Numbered from the stretch's first letter, positions 38,382-52,001 are shown. The stretch: DNA of 64,000 nt from Selaginella moellendorffii (GCF_000143415.4 NW_003314342.1:161299-225298); one strand, 5' to 3'. Notes: generated by a model from the sequence alone, not told the origin. Made by a program: numbers and translations.

Positions 38382-38615
38382 ATGGCAAGCAGCAAGACTC
38401 GATTGGTGTGCCTAGGCCTGGTTGTGATGTTTGTGATGCTCCTGGCGGTGGGAGTGGAGGTCGGGGGGATCACCAAGGCGGTGGCGCAGCGCTGCCGTGG
38501 AGGATGGTACTGGAATGGATTCCGCTGCGTGCAATGCAATTGGTACTGGTATGACAACAGCTGCCATCGATGCCAGCGCGGGTGGCGCTGGAATGGCAGC
38601 CGCTGCAGCCGCTGA
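38382..38615 (+). CDS. Secreted Cys/Trp-rich peptide, copy 1 (3 modules, 77 aa)
   Basis: Hydrophobic leader ending AVA-Q; mature QRCRGGWYWNGFRCVQCNWYWYDNSCHRCQRGWRWNGSRCSR. TATA box (TATATAAATA) at about 38258. Confidence 0.85.
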   Translation: MASSKTRLVCLGLVVMFVMLLAVGVEVGGITKAVAQRCRGGWYWNGFRCVQCNWYWYDNSCHRCQRGWRWNGSRCSR

Positions 38616-39270
38616 AGAATCGCCAAAGTTTGTGAGTGATATCTCGGGGGAGAGCAAGTCATAGAATAAGAGTGTGGCTTCGAAACGAGAATGTTTTGGA
38701 GTCCTGTAGAATCTTGTGTGAGATCTATTCAAGTTTTTGAGATGTACAGGCCCTGAGACTGTCAATGATAATAATGGAGTGTTTTCGGGAAAGGTTTTGT
38801 TGCTGTGTAACGTTCGCAATGTATGGATTTTTAATATATGGGCAGCCAAAAAACACTAAATAGCTGTGCACAGAATGACAAAAAATATATATAGATATAT
38901 GCTAATAAACAAAGAATGCCAACTATTGAGATTGAAGCAGAGAACCTGGTTACAGAAATCTGGAGTAAAGCGCCTGGCTTTTGGTACCATTATAGTGAGT
39001 GTACACACAAGAGTTCCAAGTCTTTGGTTGAGACTCAAGTCAAATTTACAATATTAAATTTTATATATATATATTACTAATTTGTTCGTGGAACTTTGGA
39101 AAATCTATTCCATATGACTCAGACAAATTTGTCATCGAATCTGATCTACAGGAATCAATATAAGTTGCCTGGTCGTGTCTTCTTTTCTCAAGATCCAACA
39201 CCAGGTTATATGATTGTAACTCTTTGGGATATTGTTTCTTGTTCATTCAGTGGCGGTGAAGTCTATAGCG

Positions 39271-39396
39271 ATGGGGATGGACAAGATTCGTGTGGCTGGC
39301 CTTGGGCTCATCGCAAGCATGCGGCCCAACGCTGCCAAAGGGGTGGTATTGGTATGACAACACCGTTGCCAGAGAGGTTGGAGCTGGCGCAACTGA
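39271..39396 (+). pseudogene. Cys/Trp-rich peptide pseudogene (MDKIR type), internally deleted
   Basis: ATGGACAAGATTCGT..., CAACGCTGCCAAGGGGTGGTATTGGTATGACAA and GGTTGGAGCTGGCGCAACTGA, with deletions and frameshifts relative to the copy at 45499. Confidence 0.75.
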
Positions 39397-40234
39397 AACC
39401 TTGAAGCAAACTTAAGAATCAACAGTAATTGCCTTTGATCATGCTGCAGTGCCAGGGTCTGGAACTTGTGATGCATGCATGACCTTGCGTCCAGCAATGA
39501 TATATATAAGTTGTCCAGGCCTTGCTGAAAGTCAAAGATCTGTTCTCTGTATTTTTCATTTAGATTCACAGCTTCATTTCGAGAGTTTACTTGATTTTGA
39601 CTCCAGGCGCTTCTCTTGGGTGGCATTTTTACTTCTTTTGTTGTGTTGCTTGGACTTTGTTCTTCTTGATTTGCAAACTCGAAGATTAAGCCTTTTCATG
39701 TTGGGAATGGAACTAAGAGACAAGGCCAGCGATTGAATCCACACCAGTCAACGTGATTTTCTTTGCCTAGCTGGACTTTCAAGAAGTTGAGAGCTCGCGA
39801 AATGAAGCCGGCCACGAACGCATTCTCGACCTAATGCGTGAGCGAACGTTTTCTCGAGCAACATTATCCGGAAGAATTTCAAGAAAGTCAGAGGACCTCT
39901 TCCTTTTCGATTCGGTGCCACAGATAATGGGCAAGTAGCAGGCTTCGAATTCTCTGGATGACTGATGCCTGGGAGGCATGCTCTTGATCAGAGGCGTACC
40001 CATCCCGTGATTTTAGACGCTCCCATAAATTATTTTGCTCCTGCCACGGCTGGCAACGACTTAGCATATTCCCTCGTGAGAATAATGCATGACATAATGC
40101 TTGCTCGGTTGTAGTATATAGACACGCCTCTCAAGAGAGGTTTCCCACTTTCTTCTAAACATCATCCAGATCCAGAAGGTCAAAGCTCGTTCTTTGCACT
40201 CTCAGTACTTAGGCTTCTAAGCACTAAGCTTGCT

Positions 40235-40453
40235 ATGGCGATTTGGTTTGGGCTTGTTGCCATGTTTGTGATGATGCTGCTGGCCATGGGAGTGGGCGGA
40301 GGAGTTGCAAAGGTTGCTGCCCAGCGCTGCCAGAGAGGACGGTATTGGTATGACAATAGTTGCCACCGTTTCCAGAAAAACTGGCATCGGTATGGAAGCT
40401 GCTGTCGATGTCAGAATGATTTGAGCCGGAATGGCCACTGCGGGCGAAACTGA
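40235..40453 (+). CDS. Secreted Cys/Trp-rich peptide, diverged copy (72 aa; possibly decaying)
   Basis: MAIWFGLVAMFVMMLLAMGVGGGVAKVAAQRCQRGRYWYDNSCHRFQKNWHRYGSCCRCQNDLSRNGHCGRN. One module Cys is changed to Phe and several Trp are lost. Confidence 0.65.
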   Translation: MAIWFGLVAMFVMMLLAMGVGGGVAKVAAQRCQRGRYWYDNSCHRFQKNWHRYGSCCRCQNDLSRNGHCGRN

Positions 40454-41165
40454 GATTAGGTAAATCTGGTTGCCAAAAAAAAAAACTAAATAGAATAAAG
40501 TGATGAGGGCTCTCACTGGGGAATGTGATTTTCTTTACCGAGCTTTTATGGTACCAGGATGTCCAGTCCAGAGATTTCTCGAGCAGCCAGAGAATTCGAA
40601 GCCTGCTACTTGTCCATTATCTGTGGTACTATTATCGGAACCAATTTGTCAACGAATCTGATCCTTCCCAGGACCAAGTCTCCAAGTCTAATGCGGTGTG
40701 CGTCCGCCAAAAATGCACCTAGAAACTTGCTCGGTCGTTGCAAGGGCGACTATATACTACCTCAACTCCAAAATAAATATTTACTAAACATGTCTGATGC
40801 CCTATGACCTTCATATAAACAGTTCATCTATCTTAAAGACTTAGGTTGTTCTTTTTACTTGCAGTAGCAGAAGGGATCTGGTCCTAGTTACACTTCATAA
40901 CTTGAATTGAGAACGAATGAAGGTTATAGACATAACATCACCAACATGAAGAAATACAGGTGAGATTTCTGATGTTTTTTGCCATCATAGGTGACCTAGA
41001 TTCGATCTTTGGGGAGAAGCAAAGACAAAGTCCTCTGTCATTTCACGATTGGGGGAGAACGCCAACTCAATGAGCCAGCAGATTGCTATGCTGCCACAAG
41101 CAAGTGTAAAGCCAACTACAAACTTTTGTTTGGGAATGACGTGCTGTTTAAGCACGAGGACATTG

Positions 41166-50166: not shown

Positions 50167-50190
50167 ATGAGCAAGACCCTGATTTGTTGT
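50167..50190 (+). pseudogene. Very short 5' remnant of the peptide family (MSKTLIC)
   Basis: GCGATGAGCAAGACCCTGATTTG resembles GCGATGAGCAAGACTCAGCTGGTTTG at about 50610. Confidence 0.35.
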
Positions 50191-50606
50191 TGCACCAAAA
50201 AGGTGCAGCAAATTGACTAACATTATATCAACGGCGCTCGTTTTGGAGCTTACTGCTACGACAGACTTTGTCAAGTCGTTGTGGAAGGACGAAAAGGTTA
50301 TTTTTCCGTATTATTGAGAGTACTACGTACTTAGAAAATCAATTTGTCAACGGATCTGATCCTTCCCAAGACCAAGTCTAGCGAACGGCGCGCGTCAACC
50401 GATGGGACACAAAGTTATCCGCAAACAATGCACGCGGAAATTTGCTCGGTCGTTGCAAGGGCGAGTATATAGATACCCCTCTCAAGAGAGGGTTCCACAA
50501 TCTCTCTCCTGGCCATCATCCTGATTCAGTGCTCAAAGATCAGAAGAAGCTCTTTAATAGTTCTGATTTGGTTTCTTGTTCTTTTCGTCAGTCAAAGTAT
50601 ATAGCA

Positions 50607-50849
50607 ATGGCGATGAGCAAGACTCAGCTGGTTTGCCTTGGGCTTGTTTCCATGTTTGTGATGATGCTGGCCATGGGAGTGGACATGGGAGGAATCGCAA
50701 AGGTTGCTGCGCAGCGCTGTCCGATAGGGTGGTACTGGTATGACAATGGTTGTCACCCCTGCCTGAAAAACTGGTATTGGTATGGCGGAAGCTGCCACCG
50801 ATGCCAGAGCGGCTGGAGCTGGCGCAAAGGCCGCTGCTGGAGAAACTGA
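50607..50849 (+). CDS. Secreted Cys/Trp-rich peptide (3 modules, 80 aa)
   Basis: MAMSKTQLVCLGLVSMFVMMLAMGVDMGGIAKVAAQRCPIGWYWYDNGCHPCLKNWYWYGGSCHRCQSGWSWRKGRCWRN. Confidence 0.88.
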   Translation: MAMSKTQLVCLGLVSMFVMMLAMGVDMGGIAKVAAQRCPIGWYWYDNGCHPCLKNWYWYGGSCHRCQSGWSWRKGRCWRN

Positions 50850-51629
50850 GGACTTTAAGCCCAAACACACCAAGTATAAAAAGATATGATGCGATGTAAA
50901 AATGTTGTTATTAAACTATTTAACTCATCTCGAGAGTTTACTTAGATTCTTGTCTCCAGGCACTGAGCTTTTCCTGGATGGCAGTTCTTTCGCTCCTTAT
51001 TTCATGTTGGTGTTGTTACGTAGCAAACGGAACAGCAAGAACAACAGATGCCGTAAACACAAAGATCAATTTACAGCATCAATTGTTGTCGTAGATCTAT
51101 ACCAGTCTTTTAGTTTTTTGGCGGTGTTTGGCCGGCGCTGGTGTTCGGATAAGATAGGAATTGCCTGGTCTGCAAGTTCCAAAACCCAACCTGATCAAGC
51201 CAAGAAGAAGCAATAATTTCGAGAGAGTCTAAAAGTAATGTATATGTTGTACCAGAGATCAGGCCAAGTTGTGTTGGAACAAACACAAAATTACTAAAAA
51301 TTACATGATTCATCCACAGAGTGAACAGAAGAACACGGCTAGCCATATTCTTATCAATATTTCTTCTTTCCATTGGTCCAAGTCAAGAGCCGCTCAAACA
51401 GAAACAAGAGTCTGTACAAAAATCTCCCTGTATATACCGTGTATACACCGTGGCCACAAGTCTATTATAATTGACTCTACATGTAATCTCTTCATACTTC
51501 TCGGCACTATAAATGCCTCCTCGGCCTTCATTGGCATCATCCATCCCAGAAATCAAAGCTTCTCACAGCAAACTTCTCTCCAAAATCTTTCTCATCTCAC
51601 TCAACTCAATCAAGAAGAATTCTTCGCTA

Positions 51630-52001
51630 ATGGCAATGGTGGCGAGCTACTCTTCTCGCGTGGCCTTCATTGGAGTGGTAGTCGTGCTCCTCTTAATCGG
51701 CGTGGACGTTGGCAATGGCATCGCAAAGGCCCAGGCACAGAGCTGTCGGTCCGGTTGGCACTGGTCCGGTGGCAAGTGCATCCAATGCCCGGCCGGGTGG
51801 TACTGGTACAATAGCAGGTGTAACCAGTGCCTGTCCGGGTGGTACTGGTACAATGGCAAGTGCAACCAGTGCCAGTCCGGTTGGTACTGGTACAGTGGTA
51901 GCTGCCACCAGTGCCAGTCCGGTTGGTACTGGTACAACAACAGTTGCAACCGGTGCCCATTGGGGCGGAGCTGGACTGGTACTGGCTGCTCCAAGAACTG
52001 A
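51630..52001 (+). CDS. Secreted Cys/Trp-rich repeat protein (6 modules, 12 Cys, 123 aa)
   Basis: Leader ending AKAQA-Q, followed by six C-x10-C modules with exact 14-aa period and 42-bp DNA repeats. TATAAAT at about 51508. Confidence 0.88.
   Translation: MAMVASYSSRVAFIGVVVVLLLIGVDVGNGIAKAQAQSCRSGWHWSGGKCIQCPAGWYWYNSRCNQCLSGWYWYNGKCNQCQSGWYWYSGSCHQCQSGWYWYNNSCNRCPLGRSWTGTGCSKN

Follow-up and report, generated by a model that had tools for sequence, protein, structure and literature searches.

Cysteine-rich repeats with the pattern C-x2-C-x2-G-aromatic-aromatic...turn...C and a period of about 14 residues are known from the TNFR-, furin- and ephrin-receptor-like (GCC2_GCC3) families, where they form domains of large receptors and surface proteins. 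The same pattern was found in a family of small, secretion-type proteins encoded by a tandem array at 38.4-52.0 kb of a 64,000-nucleotide stretch of the Selaginella moellendorffii genome (GCF_000143415.4 NW_003314342.1:161299-225298; hereafter the window, with positions counted from its first letter and genes named after their first coordinate). As in the receptor repeats, the modules are predicted to form stacked, disulfide-tied small beta-hairpins, and each is presumably similar to the single-disulfide 'A1' module of TNFR-type repeats. In contrast to the receptor repeats, two to six modules and a leader make up the whole protein, a W-x-W pair stands where those repeats have one Tyr or Phe, and the modules follow a family-specific leader which the receptor-type repeats lack and which database searches returned from Selaginella only. 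The family is new, and it is built from a known class of cysteine-rich module.

The same Cys spacing occurs in unannotated period-14 repeat proteins from metagenomes and genomes, of the forms C-N-R-C-P-x-G-Q-H-Y-Y-N-N-R (P0002, P0043, P0050, P0008) and C-x2-G-x2-W-N-G-x2-C (P0015, P0082, P0106; DUF5874-like). In these the Cys spacing and the places of the Gly, of the two aromatic residues and of the Asn/Gly turn are identical to those of the family, with phmmer E values of 1e-39 to 1e-11 that are inflated by repetition, but they are 190-3700 aa long, apparently non-plant, without the Selaginella leader and with core His or Tyr instead of Trp. Homology and convergence are indistinguishable in a module this short. 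Plant cysteine-rich peptides (CRPs), including defensins, thionins, hevein-like peptides, knottins, snakins/GASA, alpha-hairpinins, Ib-AMPs and LURE/EPF-type peptides, are small, secreted, basic and disulfide-rich, as is predicted here; they too occur in tandem birth-and-death gene arrays and combine a conserved scaffold with a variable surface. A modular architecture with variable repeat number is unusual among them, and to our knowledge the spacing C-x10-C-x2-C-x8/10-C-x2-C-x10-C fits no motif of those families. Beta-hairpin antimicrobial peptides (tachyplesin, arenicin, protegrin) and Trp/Arg-rich peptides (indolicidin, the puroindoline Trp loop) are likewise basic, Trp/Arg-rich, disulfide-constrained hairpins. 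Tachyplesin, arenicin and protegrin are, however, single hairpins with cross-strand disulfide ladders, whereas those of the present family are concatenated and their Trp residues look core-like in the models described below.

Family elements were located by a six-frame motif scan, the list of open reading frames (ORFs) and a tblastn comparison of the window with five intact members. Thirteen elements, mostly on the + strand, were identified at 38.4-52.0 kb (five cleanly intact, one open but degenerate, seven frameshifted, stopped or fragmentary), and three further elements, one of them intact, lie on the - strand at 59.5-62.7 kb (Table 1). A preliminary description of the locus had spoken of about 14 members in 13.6 kb; 13 were counted, while its coordinates were recovered by the three approaches, as were its six open ORFs (the five intact ones and the degenerate 40235 frame) and its three additional copies at 59.4-62.7 kb. 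Self-comparison with blastn resolved the array into overlapping duplications of 0.2-1.4 kb at 68-89% identity, and Tandem Repeats Finder reported a period of 42 with five copies and 81% matches at 51749-51957, within the six-module gene. Judging by the overlapping duplications, the array is of the birth-and-death type and not a simple periodic repeat.

The module consensus is C-x2-G-W-x-W-x4-C-x2, 14 residues in length. C1, W7 and C12 are invariant in the 17 full modules, G4 is present in 16 and W5 in 15. Positions 6 and 8 are mostly Tyr, varying to Arg, Ser, Asn and His; positions 9-10 carry Gly, Asn, Asp or Ser, a turn signature, and position 11 is mostly Arg. Based on the Nei-Gojobori method, the ratio of nonsynonymous to synonymous substitution (dN/dS) in the mature region was 0.08-0.31 for eight of ten pairs of intact paralogues, and dS often exceeded 1. 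Of the remaining two pairs, one could not be measured because dS was saturated, and the second, a close pair, gave about 1.1 on 1.5 synonymous differences and carries no weight. The 38382 and 48182 genes show differences at 14 of 234 coding sites, as against 23 of 92 in the 5' flank and 18 of 120 in the 3' flank. Chance is excluded because the module scaffold is invariant or nearly so and conservation is higher in the coding sequence than in the flanks. The modular Cys/Trp-rich family put forward in the preliminary description is thus real, with its Cys/Trp scaffold conserved under purifying selection and dN/dS away from 1.

RNA reads were mapped over 6 kb of the window, and 17 runs from seven studies were found to contain parts of the window sequence. 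In two stranded RNA-seq runs the reads mapped almost exclusively with their first mate on the - strand at 48.1-48.5, 50.5-50.9 and 51.5-52.1 kb, which in most stranded libraries corresponds to RNA of the + strand. The reads were confined to gene bodies, with essentially none between genes, and RNA contigs from two further studies covered the same genes collinearly. At least three genes are transcribed from the + strand; over three genes no intron-like joints were seen in the collinear contigs and reads, and the earlier claim that the members are intronless is borne out for these. The 50607 gene is transcribed and unspliced, since a 392-nt RNA contig (50512-50903) matches the window with zero differences, and transcription of the 51630 gene was observed from reads and contigs. 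The deepest coverage in the mapped 6 kb was that of the 48182 gene. At 11 positions its reads and contig depart from the window sequence, agreeing at some of these with the 38382 copy and at others with the 43039 copy, and because of these differences the RNA is attributed to an allele or a near-identical paralogue and not necessarily to the copy in the window. Reads with loose ends carrying the 5' sequence of the 45499 gene were also found. A TATA box was identified 94-141 nt upstream of the ATG in five of the six intact genes (about 124 nt in the case of the 38382 gene), with none found upstream of the 60028 gene, and the 5' ends of the RNA contigs of the 48182 and 50607 genes lie about 45-50 nt downstream of their TATA boxes.

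These data bear on the suggestion that the ORFs are non-functional parts of a repetitive element, transcribed as noise. More than half of the copies are indeed broken, and the array is interleaved with other repeated segments, but a dN/dS well below 1, scaffold residues that are invariant or nearly so, TATA promoters in all but one of the intact genes and strand-specific transcription limited to gene bodies make such an origin scarcely credible. That the locus holds real, expressed genes for secretion-type disulfide mini-proteins is, on the other hand, highly probable.

A shorter form of the six-module gene was also observed. In one RNA contig, from another study, and in three raw reads, 51915 is followed by 51978 with only 'CC' in between, a net in-frame loss of 60 nt which removes module 5 and most of module 6. 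The ends of the missing part (AG..CT) are not intron-like, and the join is for that reason read as probably an allele or paralogue with fewer modules and not as splicing. In two copies a W-box (TTGACC) lies 13 nt before the ATG, in the 5' untranslated region; the other members are without it, and no inference is drawn from it.

The structure of the products was modelled with AlphaFold2. For the mature six-module peptide, with an input alignment of window members and period-14 repeat proteins, six two-stranded hairpins were obtained at a mean pLDDT of 82.8. The 80-aa precursor, modelled from a shallow family alignment, showed a helix at residues 5-24, a low-confidence or disordered junction at 26-34 and three hairpins with pLDDT of about 80. 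In both models the strands are formed by module positions 5-8 (W-Y-W-Y) and 11-14 (x-C-x-x), joined by a two-residue turn at 9-10, and the loop-closing Cys lies in strand 2 opposite the second Trp, its partner preceding the hairpin. One disulfide per C-x10-C loop is inferred because a single Cys stands at each end of the peptide and a C-x-x-C between modules. Each module thus forms one beta-hairpin in the models. A zinc-ribbon reading of the C-x2-C pairs was rejected because the leaders are of secretory type and the single Cys at both ends fits closed C-x10-C loops, not paired knuckles.

The models suggest that both invariant Trp residues share the face of the disulfide and would form a structural mini-core instead of a membrane-insertion surface, and that function probably resides in the turns and in the variable face of Tyr, Arg and His. 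With one Cys per modelled hairpin, opposite the Trp in strand 2, and its partner outside the hairpin, the arrangement is unlike that of tachyplesin and arenicin. The analogies to these peptides and to trpzip drawn in the preliminary description are weak, because the closing Cys lies in strand 2 and the Trp residues look like a core in the models.

No above-threshold match to Pfam was obtained for the family members. Below the gathering thresholds (given in brackets) were Ephrin_rec_like/GCC2_GCC3 (PF07699), at best 15.5 bits and E 0.015 with the six-module protein (23.1); Furin-like_2 (PF15913), 16.6 bits and E 0.0096 (28 bits); TNFR_ELAPOR1_6th (PF23091), 11.5-12.8 bits in three members (33.2); and DUF5874 (PF19202), 19.1 bits with the 77-aa member (27.1). 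One of the phmmer matches of the family, P0015, passes DUF5874 at 30.5 bits, so that the link to DUF5874 is indirect only. The defensin, thionin, hevein, knottin, snakin/GASA, nsLTP and alpha-hairpinin models gave nothing at E up to 10 with four members, and the Cys spacing differs from theirs, in agreement with the earlier statement that it does not fit these families. A homologous-protein search with the 77-aa member yielded no match, none of six members was present in an exact look-up among 15 billion proteins, an ESM Atlas feature search gave no usable match, and a PDB sequence search returned nothing significant (ELAPOR1 only, at E 0.016).

Against 1.84 billion representatives phmmer returned 210 matches, nearly all of them long repeat proteins with a C-x2-C-x2-G-aromatic...C period, whose scores are inflated by repetition and which are mostly without Pfam families themselves. 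The family leader occurs in only one match, XP_024531936.1 (P0046) of S. moellendorffii, annotated as 'putative pectinesterase 11', whose first 50 residues are the family leader and 1.5 modules. Behind the modules this protein has an acidic, Asp-rich linker and then a pectinesterase domain; either the fusion is genuine or the gene model was wrongly joined. Fold comparisons gave matches that are class-level and sub-significant. The best in Foldseek was a Chlamydomonas mastigoneme (E 0.056, probability 0.94), with RSPO2, ELAPOR1 and TNFR family members at E 0.2-0.6, and its weak matches include R-spondin Fu1-Fu2, 4-1BB, HVEM, CD40 and the Eph cysteine-rich domain; VIA-align gave a best Z of 4.1 for the mGluR cysteine-rich domain, which is of the class C GPCR type (mGluR/CaSR), and a GCC2_GCC3 cluster of the Atlas was matched at TM 0.59. 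A search of the available literature library found no description of the family or of its motif. The family is accordingly undescribed, as had been supposed: it is absent from protein databases and, above threshold, from Pfam, and no strong match to a characterised family was found. The module is not without precedent, its period-14 C-x2-C-x2-G-aromatic...C pattern occurring in many unannotated repeat proteins, so that the supposed novelty stands for the family and falls for the module.

The sole matches in a family-profile protein search were two virus-like membrane proteins of 83-84 aa, which share G-W-Y-W-Y-D-N-x-C-H-R-C with the family. They are encoded on dense, co-directional, non-plant metagenomic contigs (L001:5014-5268 and L002:2624-2875) and carry A-G-W-Y-W-Y-D-N-A-C-H-R-C-x-x-G-Y-V-W followed by a C-terminal transmembrane helix; this is a near-identical module in a wholly different setting.

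The precursors consist of a short basic N-terminus, a hydrophobic helix of about 18-20 residues, a G-V-(D/E)-x-G-G-I-(A/T)-x-x-x-A / Q junction and two to six modules. Alignment columns G24, V25, G28, G29, I30, A35, Q36, C38, G41, W42 and W44 are invariant, and the G-V-x-x-G-G-I and A-Q of the leader are shared without exception by six window members and one database relative. The small-x-small site before the invariant Gln is A-x-A in four of the six intact members and V-x-A in the other two, and the junction fits the -3/-1 rule for signal peptidase. The hydrophobic leader and conserved junction noticed earlier thus resemble a signal peptide in architecture (basic N-terminus, helix, G-G breaker, small-x-small). 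Conservation of the junction exceeds that usual for the c-region of signal peptides, with synonymous sites saturated, and suggests a constrained processing site. For the predicted mature peptides the net charge is +3 to +7 and the pI 8.8-9.7; that of the 38382 gene contains 6 Cys, 6 Trp, 8 Arg and 1 Asp, exactly the composition claimed before.

The hydrophobic segment might instead be an uncleaved signal anchor, with the hairpin rod displayed on the membrane surface (type II) and not released. For a signal peptide the modelled helix is long, conservation of the junction motif is as strong as that of the scaffold, and the unrelated virus-like proteins have their near-identical module beside a transmembrane helix. 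The conserved small-x-small site directly before the invariant Gln is nevertheless classic for cleaved signal peptides, and so are the helix-breaking G-G and the D/E after the hydrophobic core; an anchor is considered very unlikely.

The favoured explanation is that the array represents a single locus in a lycophyte (Selaginella-type) multigene family that evolves by tandem duplication and decay, every unit being a small gene without introns under a TATA promoter of its own. The precursor would enter the endoplasmic reticulum and lose its leader, each C-x10-C loop would be closed by its own disulfide to give a short rod of beta-hairpins, and the mature products would act outside the cell as anti-microbe defence peptides, with the variable face and the turns as their working surface. 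Defence fits best because of the signal-type leader, the small size and basic charge, the conserved scaffold with a variable face, the variable module number, the wide transcription and the rapid duplication and decay. Broken copies outnumber intact ones in the array, and tandem birth-and-death with decayed copies is typical of plant defence CRP clusters. An antimicrobial or defensive role is put forward tentatively, at slightly under an even balance, and the explanation as a whole, a duplicating and decaying family of secreted hairpin rods serving extracellular defence, is held to be evenly poised. A more specific proposal, possible though rather doubtful, is that of lycophyte-specific extracellular effector mini-proteins in which single-disulfide, Trp-core hairpins are concatenated and set free at a conserved processing junction, and a host-microbe arms race has diversified the module number and one face. 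We know of no free-standing 'poly-A1-module' scaffold occurring as a peptide in any plant.

Several observations weigh against secreted defence peptides. The pairing of the disulfides was derived from the Cys pattern and not from model coordinates. The invariant Trp residues appear structural in the models, which removes the main argument for membrane activity, and the six-module member has a low charge density. The hydrophobic stretch together with the 11-residue segment before A-x-A is long for a cleaved signal, and a signal anchor or an earlier cleavage after M/V-G would be possible on this count. Finally, basic charge, small size, Cys richness and tandem arrays would equally fit signalling CRPs.

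The last point leads to secreted ligands of receptor kinases acting in development or reproduction, as the EPF, LURE and SCR cysteine-rich peptides do. With these the family has in common a signal peptide, small size, basic charge, a disulfide scaffold with a variable surface and tandem duplication. The mRNA was, however, recovered in numerous independent transcriptome studies, and contig depth was high for one member, which better fits bulk effectors than dose-sensitive ligands; a module number of 2-6 is hard to square with one receptor-binding geometry, and many copies have decayed. A ligand function is therefore judged improbable, if a serious alternative.

The tyrosines raise another alternative, that of mini-lectins in which exposed Tyr, with some Trp, would form a ladder along one face of the rod and bind the cell wall or glycans (cellulose, pectin, microbial chitin or glucan), or of wall peptides whose Tyr-x-Tyr is cross-linked by peroxidase as in extensins. 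In the module tally and the model, the residue prevailing at positions 6 and 8, which lie opposite the disulfide face, is Tyr, although these positions are variable, with R, S, N or H taking its place in first and last modules. Fold matches to the bacterial choline- or glucan-binding G-W...W-Y-Y hairpin repeats of CbpF, Pce and CbpJ were weak, those of the choline-binding type having a probability of 0.06-0.08, and no carbohydrate-binding Pfam family matched. The one annotated protein that carries the family leader is joined in its gene model to a pectin methylesterase, but the fusion may be an annotation artefact. A role in wall or glycan binding is regarded as unlikely, and a defensive role of the secreted peptides is retained as the preferred assignment.

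Table 1. Elements of the peptide family and neighbouring genes in the window
Feature	Position	Strand	Remarks
Intact gene	38382-38615	+	77-aa precursor, 3 modules, middle one shortened to C-x8-C; predicted mature peptide 42 aa, net +7
Decayed copy	39223-39393	+	Frameshifts and internal stop
Open 72-aa ORF, family leader	40235-40453	+	Modules degenerate (several Trp lost, Cys irregular); probably decaying
Leader-only relic	41172-41237	+
Broken copy	43039-43267	+	5-bp leader deletion shifts frame; coding otherwise identical to 48182 gene
Inverted fragment	43782-43931	-	About 1.5 modules, with stop codon
Decayed copy	44020-44214	+	No start; stop just before shortened leader, second stop after module 2
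Intact gene	45499-45693	+	64-aa precursor, 2 modules
Frameshifted copy	46665-46874	+	Shift after module 2; module 3 readable in another frame only
Intact gene	48182-48415	+	77 aa, 3 modules
Frameshifted copy	49130-49323	+	Nearest relative is the 45499 gene
Intact gene	50607-50849	+	80 aa, 3 modules
Intact gene	51630-52001	+	123 aa, 6 modules
Decayed leader relic	59457-59567	-
Intact ORF	60028-60225	-	65 aa, 2 modules; odd Cys count (5) in mature part
Leader relic, then stop codon	62611-62673	-
CrcB-like ORF	24.5-25.3 kb
Formin FH2 gene	25.6-28.4 kb	-
PPR gene	34134-36359	+	Flanks array
Mur-ligase/FPGS-like gene	about 53-54.6 kb
PPR gene	60838-61917	-	Flanks array

The broken 43039 copy and the 48182 gene show 0 substitutions over 229 aligned coding sites, and their immediate flanks differ at 9 of 241. 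This near-identity points to gene conversion, to inactivation in the very recent past, or to a variant of the assembly or haplotype. In the 60028 gene the extra Cys is at module position 8, and one thiol may be unpaired or could allow dimerisation.

A further repeated, ORF-bearing segment with the motif ...VLVSHELTLTGISLL... was identified on the - strand at 37763-38044, 42406-42780 and 47564-47770, just upstream of each copy of the three-module gene, and no Pfam match was obtained for it. A few RNA reads of opposite orientation at 47501-47900 indicate that it may be transcribed from the - strand. The PPR gene on the + strand is an uninterrupted ORF of 741 aa (E-motif). Its best matches are 25-39% identical, those of S. 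moellendorffii ranking top by score, and no near-identical protein was found in a database of 5.8 billion clusters; the gene may be unannotated. The regions at 10-16 kb and 24-28 kb have a high GC content (0.49-0.57), a strongly negative GC skew and, on both strands, long ORFs without Pfam matches; the stretches were delimited as 9755-10519, 15388-16206 and 24000-28500, and that at 24-28 kb includes the proline-rich (FH1-like) part of the formin gene. A tblastn match of the family at 27395-27481 was rejected as a low-complexity artefact of a GC-rich repeat.

As an example of birth-and-death evolution the family is a clean one, and in it the TNFR/furin-like cysteine-rich module is available in minimal, free-standing form. 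If the products are defensive or wall-binding, they would represent a new plant scaffold of tandem 14-residue hairpins whose repeat number is tuned by 42-bp duplications, of relevance to antimicrobial discovery and mini-protein engineering; and if they are lycophyte effector mini-proteins as proposed, they would constitute a structural class new among the antimicrobial or wall-binding peptides of plants, and their compact scaffold would be open to design. The repertoire of secreted peptides is barely charted in lycophytes, the sister group of all other vascular plants. The family is abundant, transcribed and wholly unannotated, and standard annotation thus misses whole classes of small secreted proteins in lycophytes.

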